Part shown: piece after piece, positions 1 to 28,824 of the stretch
Layout: every line of letters starts with the position of its first letter
Numbering within the stretch: the first letter of the stretch is position 1
Assembly (NCBI GenBank): GCA_965649825.1
Contig: OZ287697.1
Coordinates: 1,474,351 to 1,538,350 of the forward strand
DNA from: Penicillus capitatus
Taxonomy: Eukaryota; Plantae; Chlorophyta
Direction: 5' to 3'
DNA length: 64,000 bases
Position numbers and translations under genes: made by a program
The notes under the pieces: model-generated
What the model saw: the letters and a program-made list of their open reading frames with translations, nothing else
The model's database searches: none
What the model was told of the DNA's origin: nothing

Positions 1-1
1 G

Positions 2-3219: not shown

Positions 3220-3261
3220 TTAGCATCTCGCTCCCTCCTGCAATAGGGAGGATCATTTTTT

Positions 3262-3466
3262 TCAAGTCAAGCTTGCAGCGCAGTCTTCTGGATTAGGATG
3301 GGACGATCTATTTTCGCATTATTGTTTTGGAAATCATGTACTGAGAGAAATAGCGGATGGGTGTCTTATTGGTGGATGGGTTGGTTACAAACGGCTCATG
3401 GTGAATGGGTGGCCGATGATGGTGCATCTTTCATAGAACTCTTGTCTGCCTGTAAGCTTGGCTTGA
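3262..3466. mobile_element. Candidate MITE (~205 bp) with imperfect 17-bp terminal inverted repeats
   Basis: TCAAGTCAAGCTTGCAG (3262-3278) vs reverse complement of 3450-3466, TCAAGCCAAGCTTACAG: 15/17 match. No coding content and no clear TSD. Confidence 0.4.
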
Positions 3467-3526
3467 TGTGACGACTGCCTACCTTGACGCGAACGCGGTG
3501 CCCATAGCAGAGACGTCGCATCAGAC

Positions 3527-5100: not shown

Positions 5101-7481
5101 ATGTTCTTTGGCCAACAGCATCACGCATTTCGTTTATATACAACAACAGAAAGAATATATAGAGTTGTCATTGATTGCAACATCCCACTTGTTTGCGTTT
5201 TCTCTCTAGCGTGCAACATGCATGCGTGTTTAATTGAACGAACAATCTGTGGCAGTGTGGGCAGAAACATAACATTGCTGAGCATCGAGCGTGGGTAGTT
5301 AGTGCTCCCTCCTTGAGTCTGTACTGCACAAGAACAATCATTCAATCAACTGTAAATGTAATTTGTAAAGGAGATTGCTTGATGTGACTGTGAACGGACT
5401 CGAGAGAATGTTGAAGGAGAAGAGGGACTTTTCGACTGAAAGTTCTCCGACGTCTAACTCCGATTCCTCCGCACGTCACCTCACATTCTATGCTTCTCTG
5501 TGCCGACACTCGTATGACGACCAAAGACAGGAGAGACATCTTCAGACAACAGTGCACCGTCATTCTTCCATGAATGGTTTCCATCGTCGCGTTGACGCCA
5601 CTCAGTATCTCTCCCGAAGCAGCACCCTGACAGCGGCATACATGACTGGAAGGCAAACACAGATGCCGATGGTGGAGATGCGAGCAATCGATCTTGCCGT
5701 GATCAGCTAACTGATTCCTTGGCTGAGGTGACTAAAGTGCGTCTTCCATACTCCTGCTGAAGCATGGTGTGCTGTGTCTAAAGGACGAGAGATCTGGATA
5801 TTGCGATACTACCACAGGCATGATGCGGATCGTCGTCGAGAACGTCCTCGATGCAATTAAGGACGATCGACGCGTCATTGTCCGCCGCAATTGTGAAGGC
5901 GATGCGTATCGTTCGACGTTCGCTGGACTATTCGGCCTACGACTCGAGCGTCCAACCCTATTTTCACCATCTAACGGTGTGGCTTTGAGTAGAGTGTTTC
6001 ACCGCGAGAACTCGCAGTGTGACGATGCAGTCGACTAACCTTCGCTTTGGAGGATCGAGCTTCCCGTTTGTCAAGGATTCTTAGTCTTGACTGAAAAATG
6101 GAATCCTGAGAAGAAGAATTCTGATAACGACTGTCGGAAATCTAGTTTTCTATTGTCCTGGATTGGAGGATTCGAGTCTTCTCGCCTGTCGCGGATTCGC
6201 TGTTCGCAACGAGAAGCTGTTTTCTAAATCTGTCGTCGGCCTCTGTTACGAAGCAACGTCCACACAAAACAAGATGAAACGTGATCTGCACAATGGATCT
6301 GTTTCTGTTCTGTGTTATAGCGGAAGGCTAAGGAGTGCCAACCGAGCGACAGAAGTAGATGTGTTTAGTCCTATCGTTTAGTTTGGACAAGAATTCCTCA
6401 CTTAATGGATTGGTGTCCTCGTTCGCTCTCTGCACCTTTCCCTGGAATCGAATTTCCTGATTGGCTTCGACGTTGTTCTCTTTAGTGGCGTTTTCTTTCT
6501 TACGGATATAATGTGTCCGTTGACCGAATTCGATTCGGTTCACTGTCACTCTCCATTCCTACAGGGTTTGTTGTCTGCTCGCTATTATTCACACGACATC
6601 AGTCTTGTGAAGAGAAGATGTCATTCTGAGAAAATGTCTGGTGCGATTTCTGGTGGTCATGATGCTCGGACGTCTCCGTCAAAGACAGATACTTGAATTG
6701 ACGGTTCAATCAGTACGGTAACAGAAAAGTCTCAAGGGTTTCCGTAGACATGGTCATTCGATTCAGCAGAACTGAAGCTGCCGTTCGCTGTTGTCGATCT
6801 CGACATCTCTATGGCAGGAAAAAAGTGGGTTTTCAACTGCGCGTGTACGTTGAGAAGAATTCAAGGGTCGATTCCGAGACCGGAAAGCGTAAATGGTGTG
6901 AGAACATCGCCGTCTGCTCAACATCGTTAACGACTTCGTTTCATGATATGTTACATCGTGAAATGACAGTCGGCAGACAGACCGAAGATGCTCATAAAGT
7001 GTAGCAAGTGACAGAAGGGGCAGGTACCAACGAAAGGGGCCTTGTAGGATGCCGTATCCGGTTTCACTCTATTTGCACCTAACCGGTCGGTTAACGAACT
7101 TCGTATTGGTGACGGCCTATGTGCCGCCGCCGAACACGGACGGCGGCATGAAGTCTGCAAGATCCGTCGCGTCATCAAACCGTCACGTCTATGGCCTGCA
7201 CGTTTCGCGTTTCATTGTGACCGTCGTCGTATCGAGAGACTCAGAGTGAAGTTATTCAGCAAACAACCGTATGGAACGAAGATCCAGTGAATTCGTTAAC
7301 TGCCGCTGCTATTAGAAACATCGCATGTTGTGCGATTCTGATTCGTTCTGCTCTTTGTCACTCTATTGTGTCCGCATCGGTCGTCTGTTAACGCAGCATC
7401 GCACACAAGCCAACGGAACCGCGGTTGTTTTTCGCGAGGTCACTACTAAGAGACTTTCTTATCCGTCGGGGCTACGGACGG

Positions 7482-10400
7482 ATGCGGCGCTCGTTTATTC
7501 TACTCGTGTGCTGCGCTTCATGCAGCTTCTCTGTCTTGTCCACTGCTGGCGCAAAGCCATTCGCACATGACCAGCAGTCTCCCCACTCTATTCATAAAAG
7601 TAGATGCTGTTCCAGCACGCTGATATGCGAGCAAATGTTCGCCGGCAGGTGCGCGGACAAATCTCCGCCGCCGTTCGCTGCCAACCGTAAACAAGGATGT
7701 CTTCGCGGAGACCCCTGTCAAAGCATTACTGGTAAGCCTGTATAGCCAGTAGCGACTCGTCGGCACCGTACTCTTGCGCCAAGGTCCGCAACGGAGAACG
7801 ACTTCTGCTTCAATCCGAAGGACTCGACGTTGCCAGGGAAGCAGGTCAGACATTTCTCTCTCGATTGTCTTTCCAGAAGATTCACTGAGTGGCGTGTTTA
7901 GAACGTGAATGTTCTCTGCGACGCGTCGACATCCGCCGTTTCTTGGACGAGAGCTCGCGAACGTGGCTGGTAGACGACGATGCGATTGATGAAATCGACA
8001 GCGACTTGCAGTCGCTTGTCGACTGCACGAAGGAAGGAGACGTTCTGCTGTTCAACTCGACGAAAAGAATCCGACCCTCCGCTCGCGTAGTCCTCCCATG
8101 GCCGCTGACCCTGAGTGCATTCGTGGAGCATACCGCGCCCGAGGAGGGCGTGGTCCCGAAGGCAGTTAAGAGAGCGACGTTCACGTGTCCCGCCGACAAC
8201 GAAGGCGTCTTCCTCGTCCGGTAGGTCCTGTCGATGCAAAGAACACCGTTGACGGTGTGTGCCTTGCAGAACCGCAGGATCCACTCTCGCTAACCTCGCG
8301 TTCGAGGGATGCTCTTTCGGCGAATCGGAAGAGAAGAAAGCGTTGATCGAAGTAGAGGGGTGTGCCTCGGCGCCAGCAAACCGTACTCTGCTTCTTCACC
8401 ACGTGTCCTTCAGAGAGAACCGACTCGCCGATGCGGCAGGCGTCTGGGTCCACTCGACATCGTGTCTGGCAATCGACATGCGAAACGTCGAGTTCTCAGA
8501 CAATCGGTGCTCGAGCAGCGGCAGCGGCGCCATCCTCTCGTCGGACAACAGAATCGAAGACTTCACGGCCAGGAGGAATCGTCTGACAGAAGAACATGAT
8601 CGTCAGCCGTCCGTTCTGAATGCTCCAGCTGGATCGAAGACCGTGGCGAACGGCGTCAGAGCTACTCACAACGACCTCTCTGCGATGCATGTCGTGGAAG
8701 GATCGCTCTCCCTGACGAATTCGACCTGTTCGCATAACTCAGTGGAGGCGTTTGACGACGAAGAGCCCTTCGGTCCTTGCATCCATCTCGTCCGAACGAC
8801 GGCTACGATCCAGAACTCTCGTTTCGAGGGAAATCAAGGATACTGGGGAGGGTCTGTTTCCATTCAGTCCTCCAACGTCTCCATTGAAGACTCGGACTTC
8901 AGAAACGGCAGAGCCGAGAAGGGAGGTGTTCTCTTCGCCGAGACTGGCAGCGCGGTCTCCATCGAGAGATGCAGCTTCGTGGAGAACGAGGCAAGCAAAC
9001 ACGGTGGTGTGGCCTTCATCGTTTCGTCGTCAGTGTCACTCATCGATTCAAATATGAGTGGCAACTCGGCTGCGGATGTCGGCGGAAGTCTTCGCCTCAC
9101 AGACTCGACGTTGCAGATCGAAGCATGTTATTTTGAGAATGGAAGCGCATCTGAAGGAGGGTTTGTTCGCATGCAGAAAGCATCAGCGAATATCACCGAC
9201 TCAACATTTGTCGAAGGCTTTGCAGAATACGGAGGGTGTATTGCTTTAGATGAGCGAAGCCAGCTGGTGTCTCGTGACCTCATCTTCAGATCCAGTTCCG
9301 CGAGCCACAGTGGAGGAGCTGTTCATGCTTTTCAAAATAGCTCTCTGTCCTTCATCAATGCGACCTTCGTATCGAATACAGCAAGGACCAATGGTCATTG
9401 CATTGCCGTTGATTCGTCTCGCGTTTCAGCAAAGCAATCTCTCGTGGCCAACAACACGGGGGCTGCAAACGGAGCCTTCCTTACTGCCACAAATCGTAGC
9501 AGTGTGGAAATCGTCGATTCCGCTTTCCTCGGCAACGCAGCTAATTACGGTGGCGTGTTCTCTTTGCGAGCCGGGTGTTCAGCGGAAGTACATGGAAGTC
9601 TCTTTTCGGGGAACTCCGCATCTCAAGGCGGCGGAAGCTTTTACATTGGCGAGCATAGCAAGATGTCCATCCATCTATGCCGATTCGATAACGGAACTGC
9701 TGGTAATACTAGCGGAGGATTTATTACATCATTTACCAGCGAAGTCAGAGTTTCGAGTTCTCACTTTACCAATGGTTTTGCCGATGTTGGTGGTTGCCTC
9801 GCGCTTTCTGATGGAGCCAACATGACCGTAGAAAACAGCACCGTTGCCTTTTGCAGAGGAAAGAGTGATGGAGGAGCAGTTAATGTTCTTAACTCGACGA
9901 TAGCCTTAAAGAACACCATATTGGCGAATAGCACAAGTGATATTGGAGCTGGCGGAATCGACTGTGTGCTAATGAGCCTAATAAGCGCATCAAATTCGTC
10001 CTTCGAAGGGAACTCTGGTGTCTTTGGAGGTGCAATGTCTGTTGTGGTCGAGAGCCTGGCCACAGTCGCTGGGTGTCGTTTTTCGGGAAACATAGCTCGA
10101 CACAGTGGAGCAGCAGTCTATGTTGGTTCCTCAAGCGCCAGTCTTAGTCATTGCGTTTTCACAAACGGGAGTGCTGTGTATGGAAGCGCTTTTTCCATCA
10201 TCAAAGGTGCGCGGGTGAATCTTAGTGATTCTTCCATCTCTTATGGGATGAGTGACTCTTTGGGTGGCGCAATCAGTATTAGCACCAAAAGTGTTCTGCG
10301 GATGCGCAATGCCTCTGTGGAGAACAACACATCGCTGGATAGCGGAGGCGCTATCTCTGCTGCAGATTCTGCAATGCATTTTCAAAACTCAAGCTTCCTC

Positions 10401-13400
10401 GGAAACCAGGCAATGGCATCTGGCGGCGGCGTTTATATGCTTAGTGGATCCGAACTCATCGGAGATGCATTGATCTTTGATGCAAATTCAGTACGTAACG
10501 GCAGTGGAGCAAGCATTTTCAGTGAAGAGGCCTACAGAGTTCAGATCTCCAACTCTCGATTCAGTAACGGCATTGCCGATAACGGCGGCGGCGTACTTTT
10601 GCGCAGTGTTGAGATGGCCAGTGCATTTGTCAACTGCTCCTTCGAAGGCAATTCAGTTGTATCGTTTGGAGGCGCATATGTCGTTGCGCATTCCGCTGTA
10701 CGGTTTGAGAACTGCAGCATGGTGGGAAACAGAGCTGGACAGCTTGGAGGCAGCTTAATCGTCACAAATTCCACTGTCGATCTTCGCAACTGCCACTTCA
10801 GTCGCAACAGCTGGACACCATCCGGAGGTTTCATTAGCGCGATCTTGAACAGCGAGATCCGAGGACACAACGTTTCCATGGTGGAAACATCATCAGAGTA
10901 CGGAGGAGCAGTGTGGTTGTATGACTCTATCATGCAGCTAGAAGACGCTCACTTCTCAGGCTGTCACGCAAACATGTCCGGCGGCGTCATCGCTGGATCG
11001 GAGAACACCTCTTTCTTGTGCAATGACTGTGACTTCGAAGACAGCACTGCTGGGCGTACGGGAGGTGCAATGTACTTTGAAACCGTAATGTCGCACCCCG
11101 TCTCTGTCCAGATTGATGGATCCACTTTTCGGAACAACACAGCCACACTTGGAGGTGAGATCGACAACTGCACATCCACTGGCAACAAAGTCTCTTGCTC
11201 AGGTGCCATAGGCTTCGTCAGAGACTCCAAACAGGCAAACTGCACGATCCAAGACGGCAACTGTTCTTTCCTGGTCGTGACAGACTCTGTCTTCTACGAA
11301 AACAAAGCAGAGAGTTTTGGAGGGGGCATTGTTGTATCAGACATCGACAGCATTCGAATGAGCTGTTCTCGCCAAAAAAATCGAAGTAGCAAAACAGAAT
11401 TCTACAACAGAACAGAGCTGGAGGCCTTGGATGTCATCAGATCTACAGATGACATCTGTCAATCTTGGAAAGGCAACCATGCGGTTGCATATGGGGACGA
11501 TGTCGGATCATCTGGTGCCGGAGTTCACATGTCTGTCATCTCTGACAACTCACACGATGGCGTAGAGGAAGTGTCAGGAAACAGGTTTGTCGTTGAAGGG
11601 CATTCGAGCGGAGAACCTCTTCCCACCATTCACTTGGAGATTGTCGACGGATTGGGTCAGGGACCAGCCCTCAGTATAAACAATTATGCAGTCGAAGCTG
11701 CGATGACTTCTGCGGATGGCTTTTTTGCCGGATCCATCAGCCTCAAGATGAATAAGGGCGTCGGGAACTTCTTCGGAGTGGTTGGTTTTGGAAGGAAGGG
11801 TGTGTACGAATGCACGATCGACTTCAGCGAAGAACTGATCGAGTCGCTTGCGGTGGAAGTGCACGTCAGGGAGTGCAGACTTGGCGAAGTGGCCGCCGCC
11901 GACGGAACTTTCTGTGAGCCATGCACCTCTGACACATACAACCTCATGCCAGGCAACGGGACCGGATGTCGGCCTTGTCCGGAGAACGGAAACTGCACGA
12001 CTCAAGTCATCCTGCCAGCAAAGGGATACTGGCACAAGACCCCGTGTTCTGAGAACATCCAAGAGTGCATCTCTTCCGAGGCCTGCAGCTCTAAAGAGAG
12101 GGAAGACAAATTGACTGCTGCAACGAGGAACATCAGCAGCTGCGAATTCGATGAGGATTACGTCGAAGACTACACGGAAGCTCAGTGCAGAGAGGTGATC
12201 TCTGGGTGATATGGTGTGTTGTGCTCAAGGTGTGTTATCACAGGGACACGAGGGCCCTCTGTGTGGATCCTGCAAAGCCTCCCATGGGAAGTCTCACTCT
12301 TTATTGTGTGAGAAGTGCTTCTCTGGATTCGGCGACTATGCCTTGATCTTTGTATCGTTCTTGGTGCTCATGGTATTGTCTTACATCACGGTGAGAAGCA
12401 ACAAGATCTCAACTCCGAAGTTGAAGAGAGTATCTGTTAAATCCATTCGCCAGCTTCAGTCTCTGCCAAGTGGATCATCCGCAGTCCCTGTTAATGAAGA
12501 AATGGTAGAGATGATGGTCACCGGTCGCGTGCCGCCAGAGCTTCTACATCCAGAACTTCAACCAGCACACCGGTCTAGGGCAGAACCTCAAGATGCAGAA
12601 GTGGCGAAGTGGAAGGCTGCGGAGCTGTTTAAGGTTAGAGAAAGCCTCTTTTGTTAGAATGACATTCTGCTATAGATCATGGTGAACTTTCTGCAAGTGA
12701 CCGCCATTGCCGTCGCCATTAACGTCAAGTGGACTCTGGTACTGGTCACACTGTTCGAGGGCGCAGGTGAGAGAAGAGCGTTTCTTAAATAACGTCTAAT
12801 TCTCTGTTGTTTTCTGCAGAGTTCATCAGCGGCATCACCTCGGAGACGGTGAACCGATCAGCGGACTGCATCGTCCCGGACGGTGCCTCGGTGGATCGCT
12901 CGATCTCCAGCGTCATCATCGACGTCTGTCTTCCCTTGGGAGCCATCGGCGTCTTCAGTGTGATCTGGTTGGTCGTCAAGGTCAAGCGAGGAGAGCCGTG
13001 GTCCTACCTGCTCAAGAAGATCATCCTGACAGGCATCGCCGTTCTGTACATAAGCTACATCTCCCTCAGCAAAACGCTAGTCGGCATTCTGGACTGCGTG
13101 GAGGTTCACGATTCGGTCGATTCCGAGATCGACGTCACATCAGACTACTGGGTGACAGACACCAAGATCGAATGCTACAAGGGACCTCATGCCTTGTTAG
13201 CCTTTATGTTGGGATGTCCCTTCCTGATCGTTTTCTCCTTCGGCTTTCCGTTGATCACTGCCTGTGTCATCGTTACAAACGTCGAAGAGGACTACAAGAG
13301 TGGGTGGATCTACGAGACCTGTGGCTTCCTGTACCGTTCCTATAAGAGGAGTTTGGTGTTCTGGGAATCTGTGATTATGCTCAGAAAGGCTGTTCTGGCA

Positions 13401-13859
13401 GTGATCGTCGTTTTCTCTTATCCTCTGGGTGCCAATCTGCAGCAAGTTCTCGCTGTACTCCTCTTCGTATTTGTTCTCTACCTTCAGACCTTGTGTTGTC
13501 CTTACCGTCCTGAGTTCGACAGCTTGAACAAGATGGAGAGTCTGTCTATTCTTGTCTCTGCCATGACGTTTGGTTCGAGCATATTCTTTGGGGACGAGCA
13601 CGTGTCCTCCACCGCTCGTATCGTCATCACTGTCGGTATCGCATTCTTCAACGTTGCTCTCTTTCTTTTCTTTTTTGTTGTCTTTGTCATCTATGCAGCC
13701 AACTACCTGAGAACTGTTCTTGATGAAGAGGGAGTGCCTTGCAAGCCTGATGGCGGTGCTCATCACATCCTGTGGGTCTATTTTTACCATTACCTGATTG
13801 AACGAATAAAGAAGGCTATTCATAAACTTTTCTTCGGCGCACGGCCGGCGTCTGTCTAA
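7482..13859 (+). CDS. G3: Pmp-repeat beta-helix multi-pass receptor-like protein, 1,992 aa
   Basis: Signal-peptide-like start MRRSFILLVCCASCSFSVLSTAGA. GT-AG introns 7600-7648, 7732-7783, 7845-7901, 8221-8269, 11155-11202, 12195-12243, 12634-12675 and 12767-12819 give 1,993 codons. All are conserved in G6. Confidence 0.88.
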
Positions 13860-13957
13860 TAATCGGGCGTCTGCGCTCTGTCATTTTCCTTTCTGCTATA
13901 ACCTACCTAGTTGTTAAGCACTTCCTATTTAATTTGAACCTATCTGTCACAACTGCT

Positions 13958-14166
13958 TGTGAAAGCCGACTGTTAAACAAGATTAATAAAGGGGGAAAGC
14001 GAGAGGCGATATTCGGCGAAAGAATAAAGAAGGGAAGTTGAACAGTCGTATCGCTCTGTGTGGACTTTCTTTTCCTGCTATTGTTCTGACGATATCGATT
14101 GTAAAGGGATCGTTCTGGGCGTCGAAGCGCGTCTGCTACGTCATACGCCCTAGGAGAGGTTTTACA
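13958..14166. mobile_element. Solo-LTR-like insertion (209 bp) in the G3 3' region
   Basis: Starts TGTGAAAGCC and ends GGTTTTACA. 5-bp direct repeat CTGCT at 13953-13957 and 14167-14171. The paralog has a single CTGCT (41956-41960) and no insert. Internal AATAAA motifs. Confidence 0.75.
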
Positions 14167-14384
14167 CTGCTGAGTAAGAGATTGTGTGAGAATAGACAAC
14201 TCGCAACGGTTGCCACGACGCGAGCTAAATCTCAGTCCAAGAGTGATTTCGACACCTTAGGTGTTTCATGAGTAGTATGTCGTAAACTAGCTTCTCTGCT
14301 ATCTCATTCATGCAGGAAACCGGAGGAATGGCTTCAGCTGACTAGATTGCTGCGATAGTTTGCCGACATGGTGACTGGGACAAC

Positions 14385-15182
14385 ATCAACATCTTCAACT
14401 GCGTCGTAGTCCATGATTCGACAACAGTTGGAATCGACACGACAACAAATCAGTGGGCAGTGGACACGAGTGTTGAGTGCTACAAGGGATCACGTGCCAC
14501 GCTGGCTTATCTGTTGGCGTGGCCATTCTTCGTCTCTATACCTGTGGATTTCCTCTAGCTCTTGCATTCCTGGTTGTCAAGAAGGTTATAGAAGACTACA
14601 AGGATGGATGGATGGATCTACGAAGTCAACGGCTTCGTGTACCGATCCTACAGCAAAAGATACATCTTCTGGGAGTCCGTGATCAGGTTCAGGAAAGCCC
14701 TTCTCGCCGTCGTGGTCGTCTTCTCCTACGAACTGGGATTCAACGTTCAAGCTGTTCTGGCCTCTTTCGTCCTGATCATGGCCCTTTACCTTCAAATGAA
14801 TTGTCGTCCTTACCGTAAAGAGTTCGATCATCTCAATGACGTTGAGAGTCTCTCCATCTTGATTTCTTCTTTCACGTTCATTTGCAGCATCTTCTTTGGC
14901 GTCGGTTACGTCTCAGATGAGATTCGTGTTCTCATCAGTGTTCTCTTGTGTTTGACAAACATTCTTTTCTTTCTTTACCTCTTCACTCTTTCTGCCAGGT
15001 TTGCTGCTGAGTACCTCAAGACTGTACTGGCTGGAGAAAGAATTCGTATCTCGTCGACGGATGACACATTTCGGATTCTCGCTACCTATTTGATTGATTA
15101 CCTGTACGTTAATCCAGAGAATTTCGCGAAGCGATGGGGTAGATCTGCCAGATCGAATCGCTATCGTCGTCCTGAAGTCTGA
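14385..15182 (+). pseudogene. 5'-truncated, frameshifted relic of the G7 membrane domain
   Basis: Aligns to ~50895-51689. 1-nt deletion near 14530 followed by an in-frame TAG, and a 4-nt GATG slippage duplication near 14605-14612. No upstream exons. Confidence 0.88.
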
Positions 15183-15612
15183 AGTAGCTATATCATGATC
15201 CACGTCTCTTGTCTGATGGGGGATGAAAAAAAGGATCGAAGTCCTCCCCTTTTCATCGTGTCAATGATGTCGGGTATCAAGAGTGGACAGCAATTTGTCG
15301 ATGACCTGAGTTTAAAGAGAAGCGTCTCATTGTTCTGTGATTTAACCTCTCCAACACCGTCGTCGATACACTGCAATCGCCGACTCCTTGATACAGTGCG
15401 TACAGCAATGCCTCACTCGCAGGAGGGGCATCGTTCCTATTCGGACATCTGCAGAGAGCAGCAGGCTGATTCGGACTCCCTGCTTGGACAGAGGAAGATC
15501 ACCATCACCGGATGTCGACTGCGACGTGGCGCACGTTTAATGATTGCGATTTGAGTGTTCTTTCCAAAACGCAAAAGTGTGATGAAGTGTGAGAACGTCT
15601 ACGACACTGTCA
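14385..15612 (+). repeat. Second block of duplication copy A (paralog of ~50895-52155)
   Basis: G7 3' end plus downstream spacer match up to CCAAAACGCAAAAGTGTGAT.AAGTGTGAGAACGT.TACGACA in both copies. Confidence 0.88.
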
Positions 15613-15755
15613 CAACGGCGTTTTGTGGCAGTAATCGTTTCTGCGCCGCACGTCTCGGTAATCGTGCGACATCATGCAAAGCTGGCAAAAAATGTGCACA
15701 CATAGAAAGTCATTTCCCTATGAGATCGTCTACAGGGAAGGCAATGAAGATGCGA

Positions 15756-16390
15756 TTAGGAACAAAGGGCCGACGCTTTTCCCGCTTCGTTTCCCACCAC
15801 GCTCATTTCGCCAATGACACAGGGGTCGTTTATTGTGTAAGGCTCGTCCTCCACGAAGTCCACTTCATTTCCGTTGAACAGCCCACAGCACGAGTCCGTG
15901 TGTCCCATCTGCCAACCCGTACACCCTACACGAAACATTTCACCCTAGAGACACACAAGCGGCATCTCACATGCGCAGCTTGTGCAACTTTCGGCACAGG
16001 AGAATGGATTCGCCGCCATGATGTGGATAGCAGGCTCGCCTGCGTACCTCAACCCGATGATGACAGGAAAAGCTAAAACCAAAGCCACCGGCGTCCATCG
16101 AAGCGTAAGGCGAGAGACGCTCGCTCGCCTTTGAGTTCGTTGTCCGTCTGTTCGGCGACGATACTTGCGAGGGACCCGGGTTTCGTCAGCACTGTAAGGT
16201 AGACATACAGGCATCGACACCCGAACGACGGCAGACGTGTCGCTTACGTTCGGCATAGATGGAGGATTGCTCAACGTATGCCATCCCCACCTGCCGTTCG
16301 GGCGTTGGATTCGGTGACGGGGTAGATGCTTACCTCGAAGAGGCAGAGAAAGAGGACGGCAGTGGAGAGCACAGACTTCGGGTGGTGCAT
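15756..16390 (-). CDS. Small secreted cysteine-rich protein of unknown family (144 aa; 124 aa if 15988-16047 is also an intron)
   Basis: Introns 16291-16333 (GTAAGC..CAG), 16192-16247 (GTAAGC..TACAG), 16073-16128 (GC-AG) and 15926-15970 (GTGAGA..TAG) give one open frame: MHHPKSVLSTAVLFLCLFEVGMAY...SCAESCTSCAWCTGWQMGHTDSCCG...DPCV...ALCS*. Hydrophobic N-terminus, 8 Cys downstream of it, upstream TATA box. Confidence 0.65.
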
Positions 16391-16466
16391 GCTGCTCTGC
16401 TTGAAAAACGTGAAGGCTAAACAACCGGTGAAAAGACGCGAAATGCACGGTCGCTGACGCACTCGC

Positions 16467-16474
16467 TTTTTATA
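16467..16474 (-). promoter_or_regulatory. Candidate TATA box for the small secreted protein gene
   Basis: Minus-strand GATATAAAAAG about 80 nt upstream of ATG 16390. Confidence 0.45.
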
Positions 16475-18187
16475 TCCATGAGCTTCGCTCAGATGATCAT
16501 GCCTCTGATCGAGTCCATCTTCGGATACAGGACACAACTGTCAACAAAACAATCTCGGACTGTCGCATAGCGGTGGTGCTTGCGAGAGGCTTTCTGGAAC
16601 GGCGCAGTGGTTCTTAGTAGGAAAGCGAATGTTGCATGGCGTTTGGAGAGGGCAGGGATCGTAGTAGTGTGAATAGACGATGAAGAAGGTATGGATGGTA
16701 CTCTCGGCATCTCGTCAGAGAAGGCACACGCTGAGAGTCCATCATTGCGTGAGAGCAGGCTTGGGTAAAATCGCGACCTATGTCATTCTTTGCATGCACC
16801 TAGGATATGTAAGATGCGTCATCTCTGGCGGATCCCTCTATAAAGTGATATCTTTTGAAGGGGAGGAGTCGAGTCCTCGGCACAGACTCCGCCGCCGGCT
16901 GCCATTGCCCCAGTTCGCAATGAATCGACTGTCTTGAATCATCCCCGAGGAACTCTGTTGCGAGATCAGAACAGCGACGTTGGCACGAGCTGTTTCCGTG
17001 CGTCATCTGAACGGAAATCCACAAGAATGGAACGAGGACTGCATTCGATCACGCCTTCACCGTTTTCTGCGCCGCCGCTAGAGATAACACAAGGAGGTAG
17101 CTTCAACGTGGAAAACCATCCACAGATAAAACAACGACTTCACTGTCGACGACTCTGGCTGGATGCTGACGCTTCTTGCACGCCGAGTATCGAAGAATCG
17201 ACAAAGATCTCAGCACCGTTCGGCGCAGATCCCGTTCATAATTGGTCTCCGAGAACGGTGAGGTTGGAGTATTGAACGCGGGTCGGTCACGCTACCAGAT
17301 TCCGATGCATCCTTCTCATGACGTCTTTCATCACGATAGGCCTTAATGGCATCTGTATCCACGAATCCTTAGACAGTCATGAACACACGAAGGTCGAGAT
17401 GGATACTCTCTTTCGGTCGACGGTACAATAAGCCACATACCGTCTCTGTCTTTGCACCTGGCCCCTTCTCTTCTTAACGCCTCATGTTGCTTTTAGCCGC
17501 AGCTTACATGGTCGATAATAAGAGTGACGAGAATGACAAGACTGGATATGTGGTCAGGCCACGGGATTGACGGAAGAACGCATTTCGTCTCCTCTGAGTC
17601 CGCGCACGACCTCTATCATAGGCGTGGCCGGAGCAGTCTATCGCGACGAAAGTCGCATGGAGGCGGCAAATCCGTCACATCAACTCGTACAGGGAGTACT
17701 GTCGATGACGTGACAGCCAAGCTTGAATGCTAACGCAGAGGGCTTCGTCGTCATGGAGGTCGAGATGACTCGGAAGGAGTCTGCCGCCGTAACGCTCTGC
17801 CAACGCAATTGACGTATTCCATCGCCGTTCGCATCGCCGACAAGACAAAGCCAGCTGACTGGAAGGCAGCTTCTCGCGCTCTCATAGCGACCACTCTTAC
17901 CACACTTGAGTCGTACAACAACGAGCAGACAGTCTTGGCGCAAGCGAGACAGAATTCGAGTGTCCGACAGCTCCGGTGGCTGCCTCAAGTCAAGGCAACC
18001 GAAAACGCACCGCGTGACTTGCCATAGACTAAACTCAAGCCACATACTCCTTCTCACTCGGACACGATGACACTCTTATTCATATAATCTTATGGATGAC
18101 AGTACTGCCTTGTTGGATATTTAAGCAGTGACTCACCAGTTGTGCGTATTCGCTCTCTTTTCGCGGTAAAGACGTGCAACGGCAACG

Positions 18188-21100
18188 ATGCTATGCAAAA
18201 ACGCGCTCTTGCTCTTGCTCTGCCTTTCGCCGTCTCTGTCGGCCTCGCCTCCTGCCGAGTTCGACGGGAGACGACAACAAGGGGAACCGTCCTCCGCGTC
18301 GGATCTGTCAGGTATGGCCCTCTTCTTCGACGCGCTCTGCCTTTCCGAGTCACCAACTCACGCAAACTCTGCCTCGCAGAACGCAAAGCGCTGTTTTCGA
18401 CAGAACCGGCTTTACCTAGTAAACAGTCTCTCACACGTTCCCTAGACAACGCAAAGAATGTGACCCTCTCTTGTCGCCTGCGCATATGCCGCAGTCACCT
18501 TCTTCTGTCTCGTTTAGAATGCCAGTCCCGGACGAACGCTGTCCCAAGACGGTGCCTTCTCTGGAGAGGACTCAGGTACTGTCCTCGTACATCGTAGATA
18601 CCATATATTGATACCGTATCTGCCCAGACTTCGAGTGCTCTCTCGGTCAGAGGGCGATTCGTCGGTTTGTCGACGAGGATACGAGAACGTGGCGCGTGAC
18701 TGCCGCCGTACTCGACGAAATCGAACACGACGTGCAGTCCATCATCAACTGCAGCGAAGACGGCGATATCTTCTTGTTCGATGTTATCGGCACCGTTCGC
18801 CTCGCCAATCGCGTGACGTTCTCCAAGAGGCTCACACTTGACGCCAACGACGAGGATGCCCCGAGCACAGACAACGCAAGTGTTGCTTCCCCGACGAGCG
18901 CCACGTTCGAATGCCCCCAGGATAACGAAGGCATCTTTACGATCCAGTAAGCATCTTGCTGACCCTCGTGATGCGTTTGCTCATCGTATCCGATCAGGGC
19001 GAATGGCGTGCGACTCGAGAATCTCATTTTCAGAGACTGCATCTTTGACGATCCTTACAGATCCGAATCCATTATCGCGGCTACCAGCGAATGCAACGGA
19101 GGTGCGAACGCCACGCTGACGTTCAGCAATGTGCAGTTTGTGAGCAATCGACTGGTCGGTGCCGTCGCCGTCCGTATTCCAACGACTTCCTGTACGGCTG
19201 TCAAGATGACCAATGTCGCATTCGTGAACAACACGTGTCATGGGCGTACCTGCGGCGCCGTTCTGTCGACTGACAACGAACTCGTGGAATGCACCTTCGA
19301 GGACAATCATCTGGACGATGACGCAGAAGACGACCGTCCTTTCATGCTGTCCGTCCCGACTGGTTCGACGACAATGGCTCGAGGCATCACTGTGGAGAAG
19401 AACGCCGTCGGACTGCTCAAGATTCTAAACGGCTCTCTGACGCTGTCGGCATCGACCTTCGCCAAAAACCGCCCAGGTGATGACCGTCCGTTCGGACCTT
19501 TGATTCACTTCATCGACGCCGAAGCCACATTTGAATCGTGTCGCTTCGAAGAGAACGGCGGATCGAGTGATGGATCGCGGATGATGATGGCGGAGAGCTC
19601 TGATGTGACCCTCAGCGACTGTCATTTCGTCAGAAATTTGGCGCATTCCGGCGGCGTGCTGTATCTGGATTCAAGCAGTGTCGTGATCGACAGGGAGTGT
19701 CAGTTTGCATCAAATGCGGCGTCGTTGAATGGAGGCGTCGTCTATGCACTCGCGTCCAAGATCTCAACATCGAACACTGTCTTCAGCGAAAATGAAGCAG
19801 ATCGCTTCGGAGGGTGCTTTTATCTCGAATCCGACAGTAAACTGAACGTCAGTTCTGACGCGCTCATGACGAAGAACGTTGCGGGGAGTGGCGGAATGGT
19901 GGCGTATCTCGATAATTCGACGGCCAATCTCGCAGATGCCGTTTTCGAAGGCAGCCCCGGATCGGCTTCTTATGGCGGCGCCTTTTATGCGCGTCGTTCT
20001 AGGATGGCCGTGCAAAACTGCACATTTAGTGGAGGCTTTGCGACCAGAGGAGGATACGTTAGCGCCGAAGACGCCGTTCTTGAGTTCACGGCATCGAACT
20101 TCTCTGGCGGAAATGCAGTTATCGGCGGCGCCTTTGCACTTGGGAAGGAATGCAAGTTGGACATGCGAGATGTTCGTATGGAAGGAAACGAAGCTAAAGA
20201 GAAAGGAGGAGCCGTCTATGCGATCGGCGGTTCGAACGTCACGGTCAGCCACTCCCAGTGCATCTCCAATGAGGCGCTTGGAGAGGGCGGCGGTGGATGC
20301 TTCTTTGTGGAATCTTCCTCGTTAACGCTGCTCGATACCGTTCTCTCCGAAAACAAAGCTCCGAATACCAATGGAGGCGCCGTGTCTTGCCGAGAGAGCT
20401 CGACACTGTCCGTGAACGCGTCCGAGTTCTCGAAGAATGAGGCGGCATTCGGGGGCACCATCTCCTTGTCTTCCAGATCCAGAGCAGACATCGAGTCTTC
20501 CAACATTTCCGACAGTCGAGCTAGCCACTCTGGCGGCGTGTTCTTTCTCGACACGGCAGAAGTCGACCTGTCGCATTGCAAGATCTCCGTCAGCAGAGCT
20601 GAGCAACAAGGCGGTATCCTTTACGCTTTGGCCTCGACGGTGAGCGTTTCGCATTCGCAGCTCAAAAACGGTTCTGCTGTCGACGGGGGGTGCCTTCATC
20701 TGAGCGATGGCACGAACGTCTCTATCCACGACACATCTCTGACGGCATGCGACGCGAAAGAGGACGGCGGTGCGGTGTGGATTGCCGATGCCTCTGAATG
20801 CAACATCTCCGGTGGCGTTTTGGAGAGGAACATGGCGAACGCGTCAGGAGGCGCCGTCTACGCTGCCGGACGCATTCTGACGATCCAAGACACGCACATC
20901 ACAGACAACGAAGCTCAAGAAGGCGGCGGAGGCGGCGTCTACGCCTCTGGAAGGTCGGAGCTGAATTTGATTCGCGCAAACTTGACCCGCAACAAGGCGA
21001 AAGAAGGAGGAGCGCTGGCGATCGTAGGCAGCCATGCAGCGACAGTGACCAGCTGTCAGTTCTTTCAGAACTCGGCCAGCGACAGAGGAGGCGGCTGCTA

Positions 21101-24100
21101 TCTTGACCACGCGCACACTCGTTTCATAGATTGTGGCTTTCGAGACAATCGTGGAAGGCGTGGAGGTGCTCTTGGTGTGTGGAGGTATTCCGAGGCGAAT
21201 TTGACAGACAGCGTGTGCAAAGAGAGCGTTGCAGAGGAGGACGGCGGCTGCCTCTTCGGCGGCCATGACAGTCGCGTAAACATCCGAAACGTTAGCCTGG
21301 TGAACTGCACAGCAGAGCGCAATGGTGGCGGCATCCACCTTGAACAGTCGACGAATCTCGATATCGCGAAAAGCAGCTTCCTGGAGAATCGTGTCGAACA
21401 GAACGGCGGGGCCATTTTTGCGACAACGTCCAAAGTCAAGGGCACCGATCTGGTCTTCAGGACGAACACGGCAAGACAGAGTGGCGGAAGCGTACACTGC
21501 GCAGAGCACTGCGAAATGGACATCGCTAATGCGGTCTTCGCCGACAACCACGCTGACGACGGAGGTGCCGGTTGTCTCACCGATGGATCCAGCATCGCCA
21601 TTCGCGGCTGCCAGTTGAGCGGGAACGAAGCCAAAAGAAACGGCGGCAGTTTCTACGCCAATAAGGCGACGCTCCATGTATCGGATTCGCAATTCGACAG
21701 GGGGCTTGCTGGGATCGACGGAGGGTTTGTAAGGTTGGACAATGGCAGTCGCATCATTGTCCAGAACGTCAACATGACAAAGGGCGAGGCCAAAAACAGC
21801 GGAGGAGCGATGTCCATCGACGATTCCGAGTTCGGCGCCGCCGACTTCCGAATCGAGAAATGCATCGCCCGATTCGACGGCGGTGCAGTGCACATGCGCA
21901 ACGCTCGGACATCAAACTGCACCAGATGCCAGTTGACGGAAAACAAAGCCGAACGCGGGGGAGCCGTCGCCGTTGAGCACACGGAATCGTCTTCGGTGGA
22001 ATGGTGCTTCGTCCAGTCGACACTGCATGACAACACGGCGTCCTACGGAGGTATGTCCCCATGTGCCTCAAGCTCGGATACGAAGACGTGCTGTGCAGGT
22101 GCGATTCATCTTCTGGAACCACAAGACGGCGAAAGACAGAGTGCGACAGACCAAGGCCGACCACTCTTTGGCTTGGTTCGCACTGAACTGTCCCGCAACG
22201 TGGCGGAGGTCGGCGGCAACGACATCCTTGCCTTCGATCTCACAGGTGTGCGTTTTATCTGCGATGATGATGCGTCTGCGACAACGGCCAAGTCGATCCC
22301 TTCGCGAGACGAACTGGAGAAAGCGCACAGACTGGATGCGGAAGGCGTTACGTGTCCGGAGTGGCGAAACGGAGACGGCGGTGACATGACGACGTACGTC
22401 CGTTCCGTGGAGAAGACGCTGTTTTTTCAGCAAACGAACGAGAGCGTTTCTGTCGATGGCGATCGCCACACAATACGAAGCCATGCGAGTGGGACGCCCC
22501 TTCCCACGATCGTCTTTCGGTCCCTGACCCAGCTGGGGCAGCCTTCGTCTCTCGGCCTGAACCGGGGTGTGATTTTGGCCAAGACCGAATCGGGTGACTT
22601 CTTCTCGGGTAACTTGCAGGTCGACCTGCACAACGGAACCGGCAATTTCTCGAGCATCGTCGGGTTTCATAATCCTGGAAGCTATGAACTCCGGATCGCT
22701 TTCAGTGAGGACTACCTACCAGACTTCGTCGTCACCGTCGAGATTCGTGACTGCCGCATTGGCGAATCGGTGACGGCCGGCGGGTCGTTCTGTCGCCCGT
22801 GCAGCGGAGCGACGTACAGTTTCTTGCCAGATCGAGAGGATCTCGGCTGCCTGCCGTGCCCGGAGAACGGAAGATGCAACACATCGACCATTCAGCCGCT
22901 GCCAGGTTACTGGCATCCCTGGCCGTGCTCCAGTCATCTTCAGAAATGCCTGACGGAGCAGGCATGCGACTTCGACCAGCGCGAAGAGCGACTCTACGAG
23001 CTGACGAAAGATATGGAATCGTGTCACATGTCCGACGACCTTGACGACCTTGTAGACAAATACGGAGACGCCCAGTGCGGCACGGTATGGCTGCCCCTTC
23101 TCTATCTGAATGCTTTCATGGTGGGTATTAGGGTCACACGGGTCCGCTGTGCGGTTCCTGCAAGCCCGACTACGGCAAGGCTCAGTTCTTCACCTGCGAG
23201 GAGTGTTTTGCCGATGGGGTGAATGTCTTGCTCTACCTCCTGTCGATCTTTGTGTTCTTGGCTTTGGCCGCGATTGCAATGAAAACGAATCTCGAACCCG
23301 ATGACCAGCATCCGGGATCGAAGGTCGTCGTCGAGATCTTCAAGGTAAACACATGATCATTCGATGCCTGTCTGCGAGTGTGTTCCGTCAGATTGCGGTG
23401 GACTATGCGCAGGTGACGGCCATTGCTATCTCCATCAACGTCTCCTGGAGCACGACGCTCTCCAAATTCTTCGAAATTACTGGTATCGCACTACGACGCC
23501 GAGTCTCTGTTGTCTCAATCCGTTATCTGTTCTTAGAATTGATCAGCGGCGTCATCACGGAGGCCATCGAAAGAGCTGTCCATTGTCTCCTGCACGAAGA
23601 TGATGCCGACATCGAGCGCGCCGTCTTTGCCGTCGTGATGGACGTCGTCACGGTCCTCGGCGTCCTGCTCCTATTCTGCGCATTCTGGGGAATCGTCGCC
23701 GTCATTCGTCACGAAGACTGGTGTTACCTTTGGAAGAGAGCGGGAATGAGTTTCTTCGTCGTCTCCTACTTGGGCTACATCTCGCTGACGAGCACATCCA
23801 TCCACATCTTGACATGTCTTGAAGTTCACGACTCGCTGGAAGTCGCGAACAACAGCACGAGATCCTACTGGGCAGCAGACACGAGTATCCGGTGCCACGA
23901 GGGATCTCATGCAGTTCTGAAGCATACGCTCGGCTGGCCACTCCTTGTCGTTTTTTCGTTCGGATTTCCCGTCGCCATTCTGTGCATCACCCTCTTTGCA
24001 GACCGACAGGATAGGGATCAAGAAGACCGGCGAGAGATCCTTGGATTTCTGTATCAGTCCTACAGGGAGCCGTATCGTTACTGGGAAACGATCGTCCTCT

Positions 24101-24555
24101 TAAGAAAAGCAGCTCTGGCCGTCGTCGTCATGCTCGCCCATCCACTCGGTCCAAATCTACAAGTCATGTTCTCAGTTTCCGTCTTCACAGTGGCTCTCTA
24201 TTTGCAGACCGTTTACCGTCCATTCGGCGAAGATGAGAACGAGCGGAATGGCCAACAGGACGCGGCAGACGGGCAGAACGGCAAACAAGATGCGGCAAAG
24301 GAACTGGATCGACTGAACGACTTGGAAAGCATCTCGCTTCTTGTCTCGCTGCTGACGTTCGTCTCCAGTCTCTGTTTCAATGCAGAGAACGCGTCGTCTG
24401 GCGTTCGTTTGTTTGTCAGTCTGGCGATTCTGGCGCTGAATCTTGCGTTCTTCTCGTATCTCGTTTTCGTTTTCTCAAAGAAGTTCTGCACATGCTGCAG
24501 AGCTGATCCCAACATCCAGCCTATTCCATCTGGTTCGAGCAGCGGTACGGTATAA
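18188..24555 (+). CDS. G4: Pmp-repeat beta-helix multi-pass receptor-like protein, 1,980 aa
   Basis: Signal peptide MLCKNALLLLLCLSPSLSA. Introns 18312-18379, 18460-18517, 18576-18627, 18947-18997, 22051-22098, 23085-23131, 23345-23391 and 23483-23536 give 1,981 codons. Same domain order and motifs as the other paralogs. The two 5'-most introns are the least certain. Confidence 0.85.
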
Positions 24556-25038
24556 GTATGCGCTGCCGAACAGCCGATTACGCGTTCGTCGTCGAATGTC
24601 GTTGTTAGCCTTATCTCTGTTACCGCTTCATCGTTTTTATGCTCTTTTTGCGTCAAGGCTATCCCGATTAGCCTCTGATCTGTGATGGGACGGGTTTGGC
24701 GGTGAACCGCACGTAAATTATGAATCGTCATGGAACGTTATGGTCTGTATTCGATGTATCTTTTGGATAACATTTGCCAAATGGGTTCGTTTAACGCATC
24801 GATCTATTGGACGACGTATTGTCGATGACGACTCGGGTTCCGTGCAGAGACAACCATCCCTGTGACGATTCGACGCTGATGCATAGAGCCAGCTCGTAAA
24901 CGACAGCCAAGGCCTCCTGCGAGGTTTACAGATTTCAGAGTTTTCGACATGGATGAACCAAAGCGACCGAGAGGGCGCTTCACGACACGAATCGACCGTC
25001 GCCTTTCGTCGGTCGACGACCGTTTCGTTCCCTATCAG

Positions 25039-26454
25039 ACTACGACTGCTGGTTGGAAAGGGAACAGACGCCCACGTACGATACAACAGCGTCGTTCACA
25101 CGTGCATCGTGAAGGACGCAGTTTTTAGAGACGATTGACAGCGACTTGCAGATGATCGTTCACTGTACGACAGAACGCGGCACGCCGTTGTTCGATGTCC
25201 TCGATATCAGTCATCCAAGCGACCAGTCATCTTCTCGTGGAACCTGGAGATCAGCGCGCAGACGGATAAGACTCGATGAAATGACCCATCCCCATCGGCG
25301 AGCTTCACGGAAGGAGACGATCACGTGTCCACGCGACGGAGGAAGGTCTTTCTTGTCGAGTGAGCCTATCAGCCTGGGTGTGAAGGCACAGCACTCCTCA
25401 ATACTCTGTGTGTAGGTCGAGCCAGGAGTGTCCTTCTCGCAAACCTCAGATTCGAGAACTGCTCTCTCAGGGTTCTTCTGCATAAGGAGATAGCGTGAAA
25501 GTGGAGAAGTGCGCGTCTGGAAGGACATTCAGCCTCAGTATGACAGCTTTGGCTGGATTTCAGGTACTGTATTCAGCTAAAGTCGCCCACACAAATACGA
25601 GCTTTGTCTCGAATCAAGCAGCCTACGGCGGAGCGGTTTCAGAGACGACGTCGACCATCTCTGGCGATGGCCGGTACCTGGAGGGCAATGCTGTCTCGGC
25701 ATCTGGCGGAGCCGTCTATCTCGACAGATCGAAGAACGCCACGATCCATAACGCAGTCTTCAGGAACAACTCAGCCAGAGACGGAGGAGCCGCGACACAG
25801 GCATGTGGAACCGAGGGCCATCTAAAGAGTGCCACTTTTTGGAAAACCGGGCGATCTAGTGCAGTGGGGATTTGTGGACAGAGTCGTTCACCTACCATCC
25901 GAGTCGGTGATACTCAGAGAGCGTCAAGCATATGTTAGCCGTTTCATGCATTCCTCCAAAACAGTCTTCTGCATATCAATGATTCAGTCATTGTGAACGG
26001 GACTGCTCGATTGGTGCCTGCATCGATGGCGGCGATGGAAATCTTACCTACCGGTATACGATCATCTAGAACTGTTAGGCGTCGAAGGACGGTGGTACAC
26101 GGCGACTGACAGAGCATGCATCTGCTGCGTTGACAAATGTCAGTGTCACAGCCAGTCGTGCAGACGATGACGATGTTCGTCGTCATTCTTGTTCTCTATG
26201 CGCAGGTGATATCCCATCCCTGTCGTTTTGAATCTGACATCCTCGATGAAACGGAAAGCACCTCAGTTCTCGTTTCATTGCCCACTTTTGGTTTGAATGT
26301 CTTGTTCAGTGATGAACGGGTCACATCAGCTGTGCAGTACTTTGAGACACTCGGTGTTGCGTTTTGCAGCCTTGCACTACTGATTTGTTTTCTCTTCTTT
26401 TTGTTGCCAAGAACCTCACCATCGTCCCAATCAGACGGTGTGACGATCGACTAA
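25039..26454 (+). pseudogene. Heavily degraded, internally deleted copy of a G8-type gene, inverted relative to G8
   Basis: Matches the G8 cap exon, its intron (25360-25415, GTGAGCCTA.CAGCC..TGTGTAG), two beta-helix patches and the distal TM helices. Frameshifts and stops are present. About 1.3 kb and 3.1 kb of G8 sequence are missing at junctions near 25540 and 26170. Confidence 0.8.
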
Positions 26455-28824
26455 CGCGCTGGACCATGTACATCATCAAGGTCTATGTGTCCACTTATAT
26501 CTTTACTGGTGTCAAGAAGTGATTCTCTTCGCTGTTCTCGTTCTGTGGCAACCTACGATGGGCACATTTATTTAAGACACGAACCAAGGCCGTACAAGAT
26601 CACATCTTCCATGCGGAATTGCATAGTGAGCTTTTCAATACCAACTCCATGAATAATAAATGACAATGAGTGCGGTGCCTGGAGCACCTCAGCTAACAGA
26701 ATCTGGTGTTCTCCTTACTATACGAGCAAGCTGCAGAAAGGGCGCCCCATCCACGAGTGATAGTTCTGCGTATTCGATCAAAAGCATCAGAATGCGCCTA
26801 ACTATACAAAAAGCATATCCACGGACGCATCTCTGTCCAGATGCGCCCGGTTCGACCTTTATCATCTTCAAGCAACAGAACGGTATCAGGTTGGATGGAA
26901 CTCCGAACGATGAGGTGAACGAGAGACCGTTACTTATAGCATGCACTTGAAGAGCGGTCGTCAGAGCAGTTGCGTAGAAGACGTAGTAGAAATTTGCCTC
27001 CTACGACTTCCGACGGTTTGCATGCAGCTGGACTCTACCCGACGATAAATGCCGTACGTTTTGCAAGCGTCTGTTGAAGGTTGACACTGAGTGGTCTGAC
27101 GAAAATGCGTTGCCGTTTACTCGGTCTGTTGTCGACGTGCGTATTGTTGTTTGGCGCGAAGGCGAACGCATTCGCCTGTCCTAAAATCCATCTCCGCCGA
27201 CCTCTGACTGCGGCGACGGCCGAAGATGTCTCCACCGCGCGTTCTTCCGGCGAAGTCTTAACCTCGAGTCCGTCCGCATTTTCAGAAAGTTCGGCATCTG
27301 CGCCGCCTTGTGCGACGAAGACTGCCTCGTCGTCAACGAGGCACGAGTACGAAGCGGTGAATCCTTCTCGCACGTCCCAAACGAGCAAGGCTGCAGAGGA
27401 GGGCCGTTCTTCTGTTGCTGGGCGAGGTCACAGTCAGAGCCGATCCCTGAGACAAGATGATGGCCAGGACGACGAAGCTCGCGCAAGTGAGACGCCTGCT
27501 GTCTGCGAGAACGATCTCTTGACGCCAGTTCGCCTTGTCTTAGGTCGTCCTTGCTCGCTCAATGAACAGATCGTCAAAGAACACTTGAACGAAACAACGA
27601 GAACGTGGAGCATCAGTTCTGCCCTTGTTAACGCCCCCGGGGTTAGCATCCAAGGCATTATCGACTGCACGAAGCCAGACGATGTGCTTTCCTTCGCTGT
27701 GATGAGAGTCTGGGCGTCTCCGCGCATCGTCATTTCATGGCCGTTGACGTTGACAGGACCAGAGGACAGTTCCTACGCAAAGACGACCTTCATCTGTGCG
27801 AACACAAGAGATGGCGTTTTCTTTGTCAAGTGAGATTTGGATTTTCGATTTGTTATTGTCTGATGTTGGTCTCGTATTCAGGTCGCCGGGTGTCCATTTC
27901 GCGAATCTAGCATTCGAAGACTGCGCTCTCGAACCTGGCAGTTCTGGGTTCATCGTGGAAGTTGAGAACTGTACTTCCAGTCGCATCAGAGGCACTATTC
28001 AGTTTCACCATGTCAGCTTCAGGAAGAACACCCTGATCAACGGCACGGCACTCGCGATACAGTCTCCATCTTGCTCTGAGCTGGAGTTGAGCGATTTCGT
28101 CTTCGAGAACAATACGTGTGTTGGTCGTTGTGGCGTGATCATGTCTAGACGAAATCGATTAACAGACGTCGTCATTCGGCACAACACGCAGTATGACTCC
28201 GAGAACAGCAACACAGCAGTGTTCTTCGCGCCTCCTGGATCTGAGACGTCAGTGGACCGCATGATCAGTTCAGAGAACAGATGTTCAAGCATCGCAGTTC
28301 AGAATGGATTGCTAGACATGACACGTTCTACATTCACCAAGAATTCGATCGAACCTAACCAGGATGGTATGGGCGTTACATCCCTCATGTTGACCTCGGC
28401 GTCAGTGTCGATCATAGAATGCCGGTTTGAACAGAACACGGCTCCCATAGGAGGTGCCGTTGCGATGTCAGAATCGAATGTCACCTTCGCCGACAGCAGT
28501 TTTGAAGCAAATACTGCCAGAAGCGGGGGCGTCATGGTGTTTGGAGATAGCAGCACAGTCCGGATTCAATCCTGCGACTTCTTCATGAATGAAGCTCTCG
28601 AGTTGGGTGGCGTACTAGTGGCGATAGAGTCTCGGTTAATTGTCACGGACTCCGTTTTTGAGAAGAACTCTGCAAACAACTCTGGTGGGTGTATTCTTCT
28701 GGAAGGCTTGAGCAATCTTACAATGTCATTCACGGCGATGAACAACAATGGAGCTGCTTTTGGTGGTGCTGTTGCGCTCGAAGGGAAGACATCGGGAAAT
28801 TTGATGAATTCGTCCTTCCGCATG

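Follow-up and report, generated by a model that had tools for sequence, protein, structure and literature searches.

Results

Gene structure and flanking elements

The window (the whole 64,000-nucleotide stretch of DNA analyzed) very probably contains, as judged from its letters and their conservation, a genuine eukaryotic gene of five exons that has so far escaped annotation. It lies on the minus strand, its coding sequence runs from 16390 to 15756, and its predicted product is a 144-residue acidic precursor. An earlier note on this DNA had proposed a hidden frame joined across four introns; we reproduced that model exactly, on the minus strand, and comparison with four other copies of the locus (L002, L007, L008, and L009; see below) supports it. 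The coding sequence of 435 nt, or 144 codons, would yield the product MHHPKSVLSTAVLFLCLFEVGMAYVEQSSIYAELLTKPGSLASIVAEQTDNELKAFPVIIGLRYAGEPAIHIMAANPFSCAESCTSCAWCTGWQMGHTDSCCGLFNGNEVDFVEDEPYTINDPCVIGEMSVVGNEAGKASALCS. Its introns measure 43, 56, 56, and 45 nt in order, the third having GC-AG ends.

Exon 1 (16334..16390, minus strand, as are all parts of the gene) carries the ATG and spans 19 codons (MHHPKSVLSTAVLFLCLFE; dN/dS 0.41); the signal-peptide-like start described in the earlier note was present as a hydrophobic exon 1 by hydropathy. A 5-nt indel in L007-9 lies immediately 5′ of the ATG and marks the start of the coding frame. In L007-9, intron 1 (16291..16333, 43 nt, GT-AG, GTAAGC..CAG) retains both its donor and its acceptor and is lengthened to 60 nt by a 17-nt insertion, whose length is not divisible by 3. 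Exon 2 (16248..16290, 43 nt) and exon 3 (16129..16191, 63 nt, encoding a variable acidic linker) each have the same length in the five copies, and a conserved SSIYxELLxKP block spans the two; between them, intron 2 (16192..16247, 56 nt, GT-AG, GTAAGC..CAG) retains its splice sites in L007-9. Intron 3 (16073..16128, 56 nt) is the GC-AG intron, with exon end AAG followed by GCGAGC...TTTTAG; its GCGAGC donor does not vary among the five copies, and read-through of the intron stops at the acceptor TAG in both lineages. Exon 4 (15971..16072, 102 nt) encodes the end of the linker and C80, C84, and C87. Intron 4 (15926..15970, 45 nt, GT-AG, GTGAGA..TAG) contains an in-frame TAG and keeps its splice sites in the five copies, and the codon for W89 is formed across its splice junction. 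Exon 5 (15756..15925, 170 nt including the TAA) encodes C90, C101, C102, C124, and C143 together with an acidic NGNEVDFV(E/D)DEPYTINDP stretch. The resulting arrangement, C80-x3-C84-x2-C87-x-W-C90, C101C102, C124, C143, agrees with the eight-cysteine pattern (CxxxCxxCxWC, CC, C, C) that had been read earlier.

Upstream of the gene, the TATA box noted previously was read directly as TATAAAAA at 16474..16467 on the minus strand (feature 16467..16474), 84 nt 5′ of the ATG; the corresponding TATA-like sequence is ATAAAAAG in L007 and L009 and ACAAAAAG in L008. A second upstream block, TCAGAGGCATGATCATCTGAGCGAAGC (16482..16508, minus strand), contains the palindrome ATGATCAT and is a candidate promoter element that may be a transcription-factor site. 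In the alignment of the five copies (alignment A1), 25 of its 27 positions are invariant, the exons being less conserved, and it occurs once in the window when up to 3 mismatches are allowed. This 27-nt block lies beyond the TATA-like box and is near-invariant though the copies are ∼25% diverged; its 8-bp palindrome is flanked by TCAGA/TCTGA. On the other side of the gene, a probable 3′ untranslated region (15673..15755, minus strand) is marked by similarity to L007-9 that runs to about 15673, and the first ∼20 nt past the stop are conserved among the copies.

The gene was said to lie just beyond a duplication breakpoint at ∼15612 and to be missing from the second copy of the duplicated segment. 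Self-comparison of the window placed the similarity break at 15614, with 14384-15614 showing 77% similarity to 50900-52159 and 15615-18660 being unique in the window, and detected no counterpart of the gene in copy B or at any other position. Scanning the window for Rfam families and tRNAs gave no match.

In the public collection, the contig of the window is ctg340394_13x (576,620 bp) of ENA analysis ERZ25074695, for which the ORF calls are prokaryote-style only. Two such calls overlap the gene: P0001 (167 aa, 15945-16448, minus strand), which reads through introns, and P0069 (60 aa, 15759-15941, minus strand), which starts at an ATG inside intron 4. Both are artefactual fragments, and thus the eukaryotic contigs of ERZ25074695 are mis-annotated in protein collections.

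Intrinsic coding evidence

To put the spliced frame on a quantitative footing, a dynamic programming search was run for ATG-started frames with up to four introns of 40-60 nt and G[TC]RAG...YAG ends. A dinucleotide-shuffled 64-kb strand gave ∼5.4 loci at which a spliced ORF reached 144 codons or more; taken by itself, an open spliced frame is therefore not significant, being expected several times per window. For codon usage, the long ORFs of the window served as the training set of the scoring table. The spliced model scored +28.3 bits (0.195 bit/codon), which falls in the span seen for real coding windows (43 ± 11), and the two other frames scored −58 and −47. The 216 chance spliced ORFs had a mean of −0.044 ± 0.062 bit/codon and a maximum of 0.117, all below the value for the gene, and each of the five exons had its top or joint-top codon score in the proposed frame.

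The introns also resemble those of the surroundings. Neighbouring genes yielded 28 inferred introns of 42-61 nt, accepted only between long coding ORFs, a chain gene finder lacking an intergenic state having over-joined genes. The introns of the small gene, which measure 43-56 nt in the window and 45-60 nt in L007-9 and have the same ends in both, fall in this local short-intron class. A possible second GC-AG intron (GAG followed by GCGAGT...GCAG, 55 nt) was seen at 31465-31519 on the plus strand, by the chain search only, where it would link ORF 27796-31482 to the next ORF.

Conservation of the gene in two assemblies

Exhaustive HMMER searching with the exon-5 peptide retrieved P0002, a 60-aa ORF with 98% identity, whose 90% cluster has three members; through these we located four further genomic copies. 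One of them, L002, comes from another contig (12x) of ERZ25074695; its collinearity with window positions 25950..6801 (∼19 kb) at ∼96.5% marks it as either a second haplotype or a duplicate of very recent origin. The other three, L007, L008, and L009, are carried by two contigs of a different assembly, ERZ26696514, and are ∼81% identical to the window copy in exons. Because L007-9 are near-identical to one another, the five copies represent effectively two independent lineages, and all comparisons fall within one narrow lineage. An origin of L007-9 as recent gene-conversion copies is unlikely, since their ∼19% exon divergence speaks against it.

None of the five copies interrupts the 144-codon spliced frame, and each of the five exons has the same length throughout. 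All eight splice dinucleotides, GC donor included, and the eight mature cysteines are invariant, as is an acidic stretch within residues 78-144. Every indel among the copies is confined to introns or untranslated regions (intron lengths, window/L007-9: 43/60, 56/53, 56/59, and 45/45). In a neutral simulation at the non-exon divergence (20,000 trials), the frame survived in 1.8%, the eight splice dinucleotides in 2.1%, and both in 0.035%; 0.3% of trials kept the eight cysteines, and 0 of 20,000 kept frame, splice sites, and cysteines together.

Selection along the protein

Between the window and L007, divergence was 18.9% in exons, 23.4% in introns, and 34% at synonymous sites. Changes at codon positions 1/2/3 numbered 29/14/39, and dN/dS was 0.36 overall (32.7 synonymous and 49.3 nonsynonymous changes). 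Constraint was unevenly distributed: exon 5 gave a dN/dS of 0.10 (17 synonymous, 10 nonsynonymous changes), and the value was 0.14 for codons 78-144 versus 0.68 for codons 1-77. The C-terminal part of the protein is under purifying selection. Exons 2-3 had a dN/dS of 0.89 and exons 2-4 of ∼0.9, so constraint on the linker is weak.

Between the window and L002, exon 5 showed 3 synonymous codon changes and 1 nonsynonymous change, and 1 of the 67 residues of the cysteine-rich domain differed; 11 of the 12 amino-acid differences lay in codons 1-88, where there were 0 synonymous changes. This 11:0 excess in the first 88 codons is as compatible with neutrality (P about 0.06) as with diversifying selection.

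Alternative readings of the open frame

We judge the gene to be real because its frame, splice sites, and cysteines are conserved and the unspliced ORFs are not. That short introns and a loose splice consensus assembled the frame by chance from noncoding DNA is highly improbable. Such an origin would be in keeping with the several loci per shuffled strand, with a dN/dS of ∼0.85 between the two closest copies, and with the finding of no homologue outside the lineage in the collections searched. It is opposed by the retention of frame, splice sites, exon lengths, and cysteines at ∼19% exon divergence, by the restriction of indels to introns and untranslated regions, by the low dN/dS of exon 5, by the failure of any neutral trial to keep all features, and by a codon usage above that of every null ORF.

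It is scarcely credible that the true product is instead the plus-strand ORF 15555..16076 (173 codons) or the unspliced minus-strand ORF 15945..16448 that corresponds to P0001. Neither is conserved in L007-9, the 17-nt indel of intron 1 breaking the frame of P0001, and the plus-strand frames have lower codon scores (+5, −23, and −97 bits) than the spliced model. Both ORFs are long for DNA of 50% GC, and the plus-strand frame continues the upstream ORF 14592..15179 with only two stops between; against such a continuation, the upstream gene ends at a stop (15180-15182) that is common to its paralogue, and substitutions at the small gene peak at the third codon position of the minus strand. Shadow ORFs are expected in the antisense register of coding exons. 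The plus-strand ORF occupies exactly that register relative to exons 4-5 and scores poorly, and we therefore regard it as a shadow ORF.

Predicted protein and search for relatives

The precursor has a calculated mass of 15.4 kDa and a pI of about 4.4. By hydropathy its sole hydrophobic stretch is residues 7-18, following K5. These residues may act as a signal peptide that directs the protein into the secretory pathway. The −3/−1 rule for cleavage fits the window copy (G-M-A before Y) and fits L007-9 poorly (R-V-A before H). Residues ∼24-77 could serve as a fast-evolving linker or pro-region, and residues 78-144 would fold as a compact domain with up to four disulfides that might act extracellularly as a binding module. 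The overall architecture looks like a pre-(pro-)protein that ends in a disulfide-rich domain. Structure prediction for exon 5 alone gave a pLDDT of 39, which is unusable.

The profile search that had been proposed was carried out with all five sequences and returned no Pfam family at E≤10. PDB sequences contained no relative, the single weak match being to LexA (E 0.8-1.9). In a collection of 5.8 billion proteins that includes the Logan assemblies, searches with the single sequence and with the five-sequence profile recovered only the gene's own read-through ORF P0001, the spliced product being absent from it. Exhaustive HMMER searching of a library of 1.84 billion representatives with the exon-5 peptide returned its own cluster and three further matches, and a scan of JGI metagenomes with exon-5-only patterns gave no match. 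The gene appears to found a protein family for which no relatives were detected outside the five copies in the collections searched.

The three further matches (P0003, P0004, and P0005) were rejected as relatives. They score ∼23 bits per stretch and pass only when summed over 9-21 repeats. They look like translated tandem DNA repeats, with E-values of ∼1e-9 to 1e-10 against the 55-aa query; such summing of weak repeat stretches is a trap for searches with short cysteine-rich queries.

The neighbouring gene R2 and the receptor-like family

The head-to-head neighbour of the small gene, R2, occupies 18188..24552 on the plus strand; its start, placed from the ORF and a signal-peptide-like sequence (MLCKNALLLLLCLSPSLSA) only, lies ∼1.8 kb from the ATG of the small gene. 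R2 has a Chlam_PMP/NosD-type ectodomain (19008-23222, plus strand), and its C-terminal domain (23353-24552, plus strand) contains several hydrophobic helices. More generally, the large ORFs of the window contain Chlam_PMP repeats and NosD-like beta-helix matches, followed by C-terminal domains with about six hydrophobic helices, one of which weakly matches the fungal-type TRP family PF06011 (E = 0.004, below the Pfam cut-off). "Receptor-like" is a reasonable, provisional label for these PMP-repeat proteins. The family is large and, in the collection searched, almost entirely confined to ERZ25074695 and ERZ26696514; a literature search on eukaryotic Chlam_PMP proteins gave nothing useful. The receptors are under purifying selection, with dN/dS values of 0.18-0.48, and no segment convincingly has dN > dS.

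The small gene and R2 are syntenic and head-to-head in all five copies. Two of these, the paralogous loci L008 and L009, share one contig at a distance of 66 kb, and their other flanks are unlike.

Discussion

Comparison with known systems

The predicted product shares several properties with small secreted cysteine-rich proteins, which as a class (fungal and oomycete effectors, plant cysteine-rich peptides, animal mini-proteins) are grouped by description, not by homology, and no member of which matched our sequences. The shared properties are a short precursor (144 aa) with an N-terminal signal-like segment and no other hydrophobic helix, an even number of cysteines (eight in the 121 residues after presumed cleavage, that is, after residue 23), a conserved cysteine scaffold beside faster-evolving sequence, restriction to a lineage, and several short introns. 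The gene is best described as representing a family that is new and restricted to its lineage but made up of proteins of a familiar kind.

Linked pairs of a small secreted ligand and a polymorphic receptor underlie self-recognition at the Brassica SCR/SRK and Papaver PrsS/PrpS loci. Like SCR/SP11 beside SRK, the locus described here has a small eight-cysteine protein with a predicted signal peptide beside a large membrane-receptor-like gene, with the linkage present in all copies. The likeness goes little further. None of the five sequences matched an SCR-like or defensin-like Pfam profile at E≤10, and the cysteine spacing is, we presume, different from that of SCR. The mature SCR/SP11 peptide is hypervariable with only its cysteines conserved, whereas here the cysteine domain is conserved and the variation lies in the N-terminal half. 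SRK is a receptor kinase; R2 is not, being a PMP-repeat protein with several C-terminal hydrophobic helices, and its adjacency in five of five copies does not identify it as a receptor. The Papaver system offers a predicted secreted protein of ∼15 kDa beside a novel multipass membrane protein as a parallel; however, the Self-incomp_S1 profile of PrsS was not matched here (Pfam, E≤10), and R2 is far larger than PrpS and has a beta-helix ectodomain.

The C-x2-C then C-x-W-C motif presumably resembles the core of the PSI (plexin-semaphorin-integrin) domain, a likeness that we take as a lead only. Pfam PSI was unmatched at E≤10, and the full eight-cysteine spacing differs. Because CxxC and CxWC share one cysteine (C84-x2-C87-x-W-C90), one cysteine and the loop of the PSI pattern are missing.

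The small gene as a neighbour of R2

The earlier note had further suggested that the product might be the cognate ligand, or a co-factor, of the receptors among which it lies. The positional part of that idea held, since the gene stands beside a receptor-like gene in five copies; nothing beyond position came to its aid. We consider it unlikely that the secreted cysteine-rich domain binds the ectodomain of R2 or its paralogues and that the two genes have been kept together for that reason. The head-to-head order of the five copies, among them the two paralogous loci whose other flanks differ, points in that direction, as do the probably extracellular location predicted for the product and the ratios of nonsynonymous to synonymous changes in the N-terminal half (11:0 for window versus L002, 3:0 for L007 versus L008). 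Adjacency is nevertheless the sole link, and duplication that copies neighbours together would explain it. The earlier note had proposed looking for similar genes beside other clusters of the family; neither a relative nor an ORF with the same cysteine spacing was found beside the other family genes of the window or in four further clusters (L003-L006). The upstream block at 16482-16508 is absent from other promoters in the window, and no promoter motif is shared with the receptors. Between the haplotype-like contigs the cysteine domain is conserved, not polymorphic, and the dN/dS range of the receptors, with no convincing segment of dN > dS, likewise argues against a pair of this kind. It is also doubtful that R2 and the small gene encode a receptor (or channel) and its ligand that have stayed together through speciation and duplication, with specificity carried by the fast-evolving N-terminal half of the small protein. 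The fallback offered in the earlier note, an unrelated neighbour, is the default reading, and the product is best treated as a lineage-restricted secreted cysteine-rich protein and a conserved neighbour of R2, not as an established ligand.

The locus thus provides a real intron-split gene that was recovered by tool-free reading of raw sequence and that is the only nonreceptor gene with a stable place in the large, rearranging array of genes for PMP-repeat membrane proteins. If the functional link were true, the gene would be the first handle on what the receptor-like family senses, and a true pair would constitute a previously unknown extracellular recognition system; without the link, the product is an ordinary orphan secreted cysteine-rich protein.

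Rearrangement of the surrounding array

Window segment 14384-15614 (plus strand) is a truncated receptor C-terminal membrane domain that is probably a gene fragment or pseudogene. It contains an ORF of 192 aa (14604-15182) with ∼four hydrophobic helices and a conserved stop; upstream of this ORF the frame is broken, and dN/dS versus L002 is 0.38. The 3′ flank of this truncated copy is also homologous to 50900-52159 and to L006 18048-19313. In L007/L009 (10269-11679), the 3′ side of the small gene directly meets a homologue of window positions 1-3522. Window positions 3774-15600 (copy A plus the truncated C-terminal fragment) are therefore an insertion or duplication relative to L007/L009, and hence the array is actively rearranging.

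Divergence between window positions 6801-25950 and L002 is a mosaic, with stretches of ∼900-1000 nt that are free of differences (e.g., 9301-10300) adjoining ones with a synonymous divergence of 0.1-0.2. One 500-nt bin (12301-12800) showed 97 differences, possibly an alignment artefact. The mosaic points to gene conversion between paralogous genes or to old haplotypes that recombine. ORFs of Ty3/gypsy-type retroelements (RVT_1, RNase H, integrase) lie beside several clusters (L002 19164-20183, L003 1-92, and L009 645-3455), and such elements may contribute to rearrangements of the array.

In L004 (ERZ25074695 ctg340592_344x, 6.9 Mb), the receptor C-terminal family has a distant member, with 41% identity, close to an A2M/bMG10/EGF_Teneurin gene. 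The genome of L004 is represented at 344x versus 12-13x for the window, and the organism of the window is thus a minor component of the sample.
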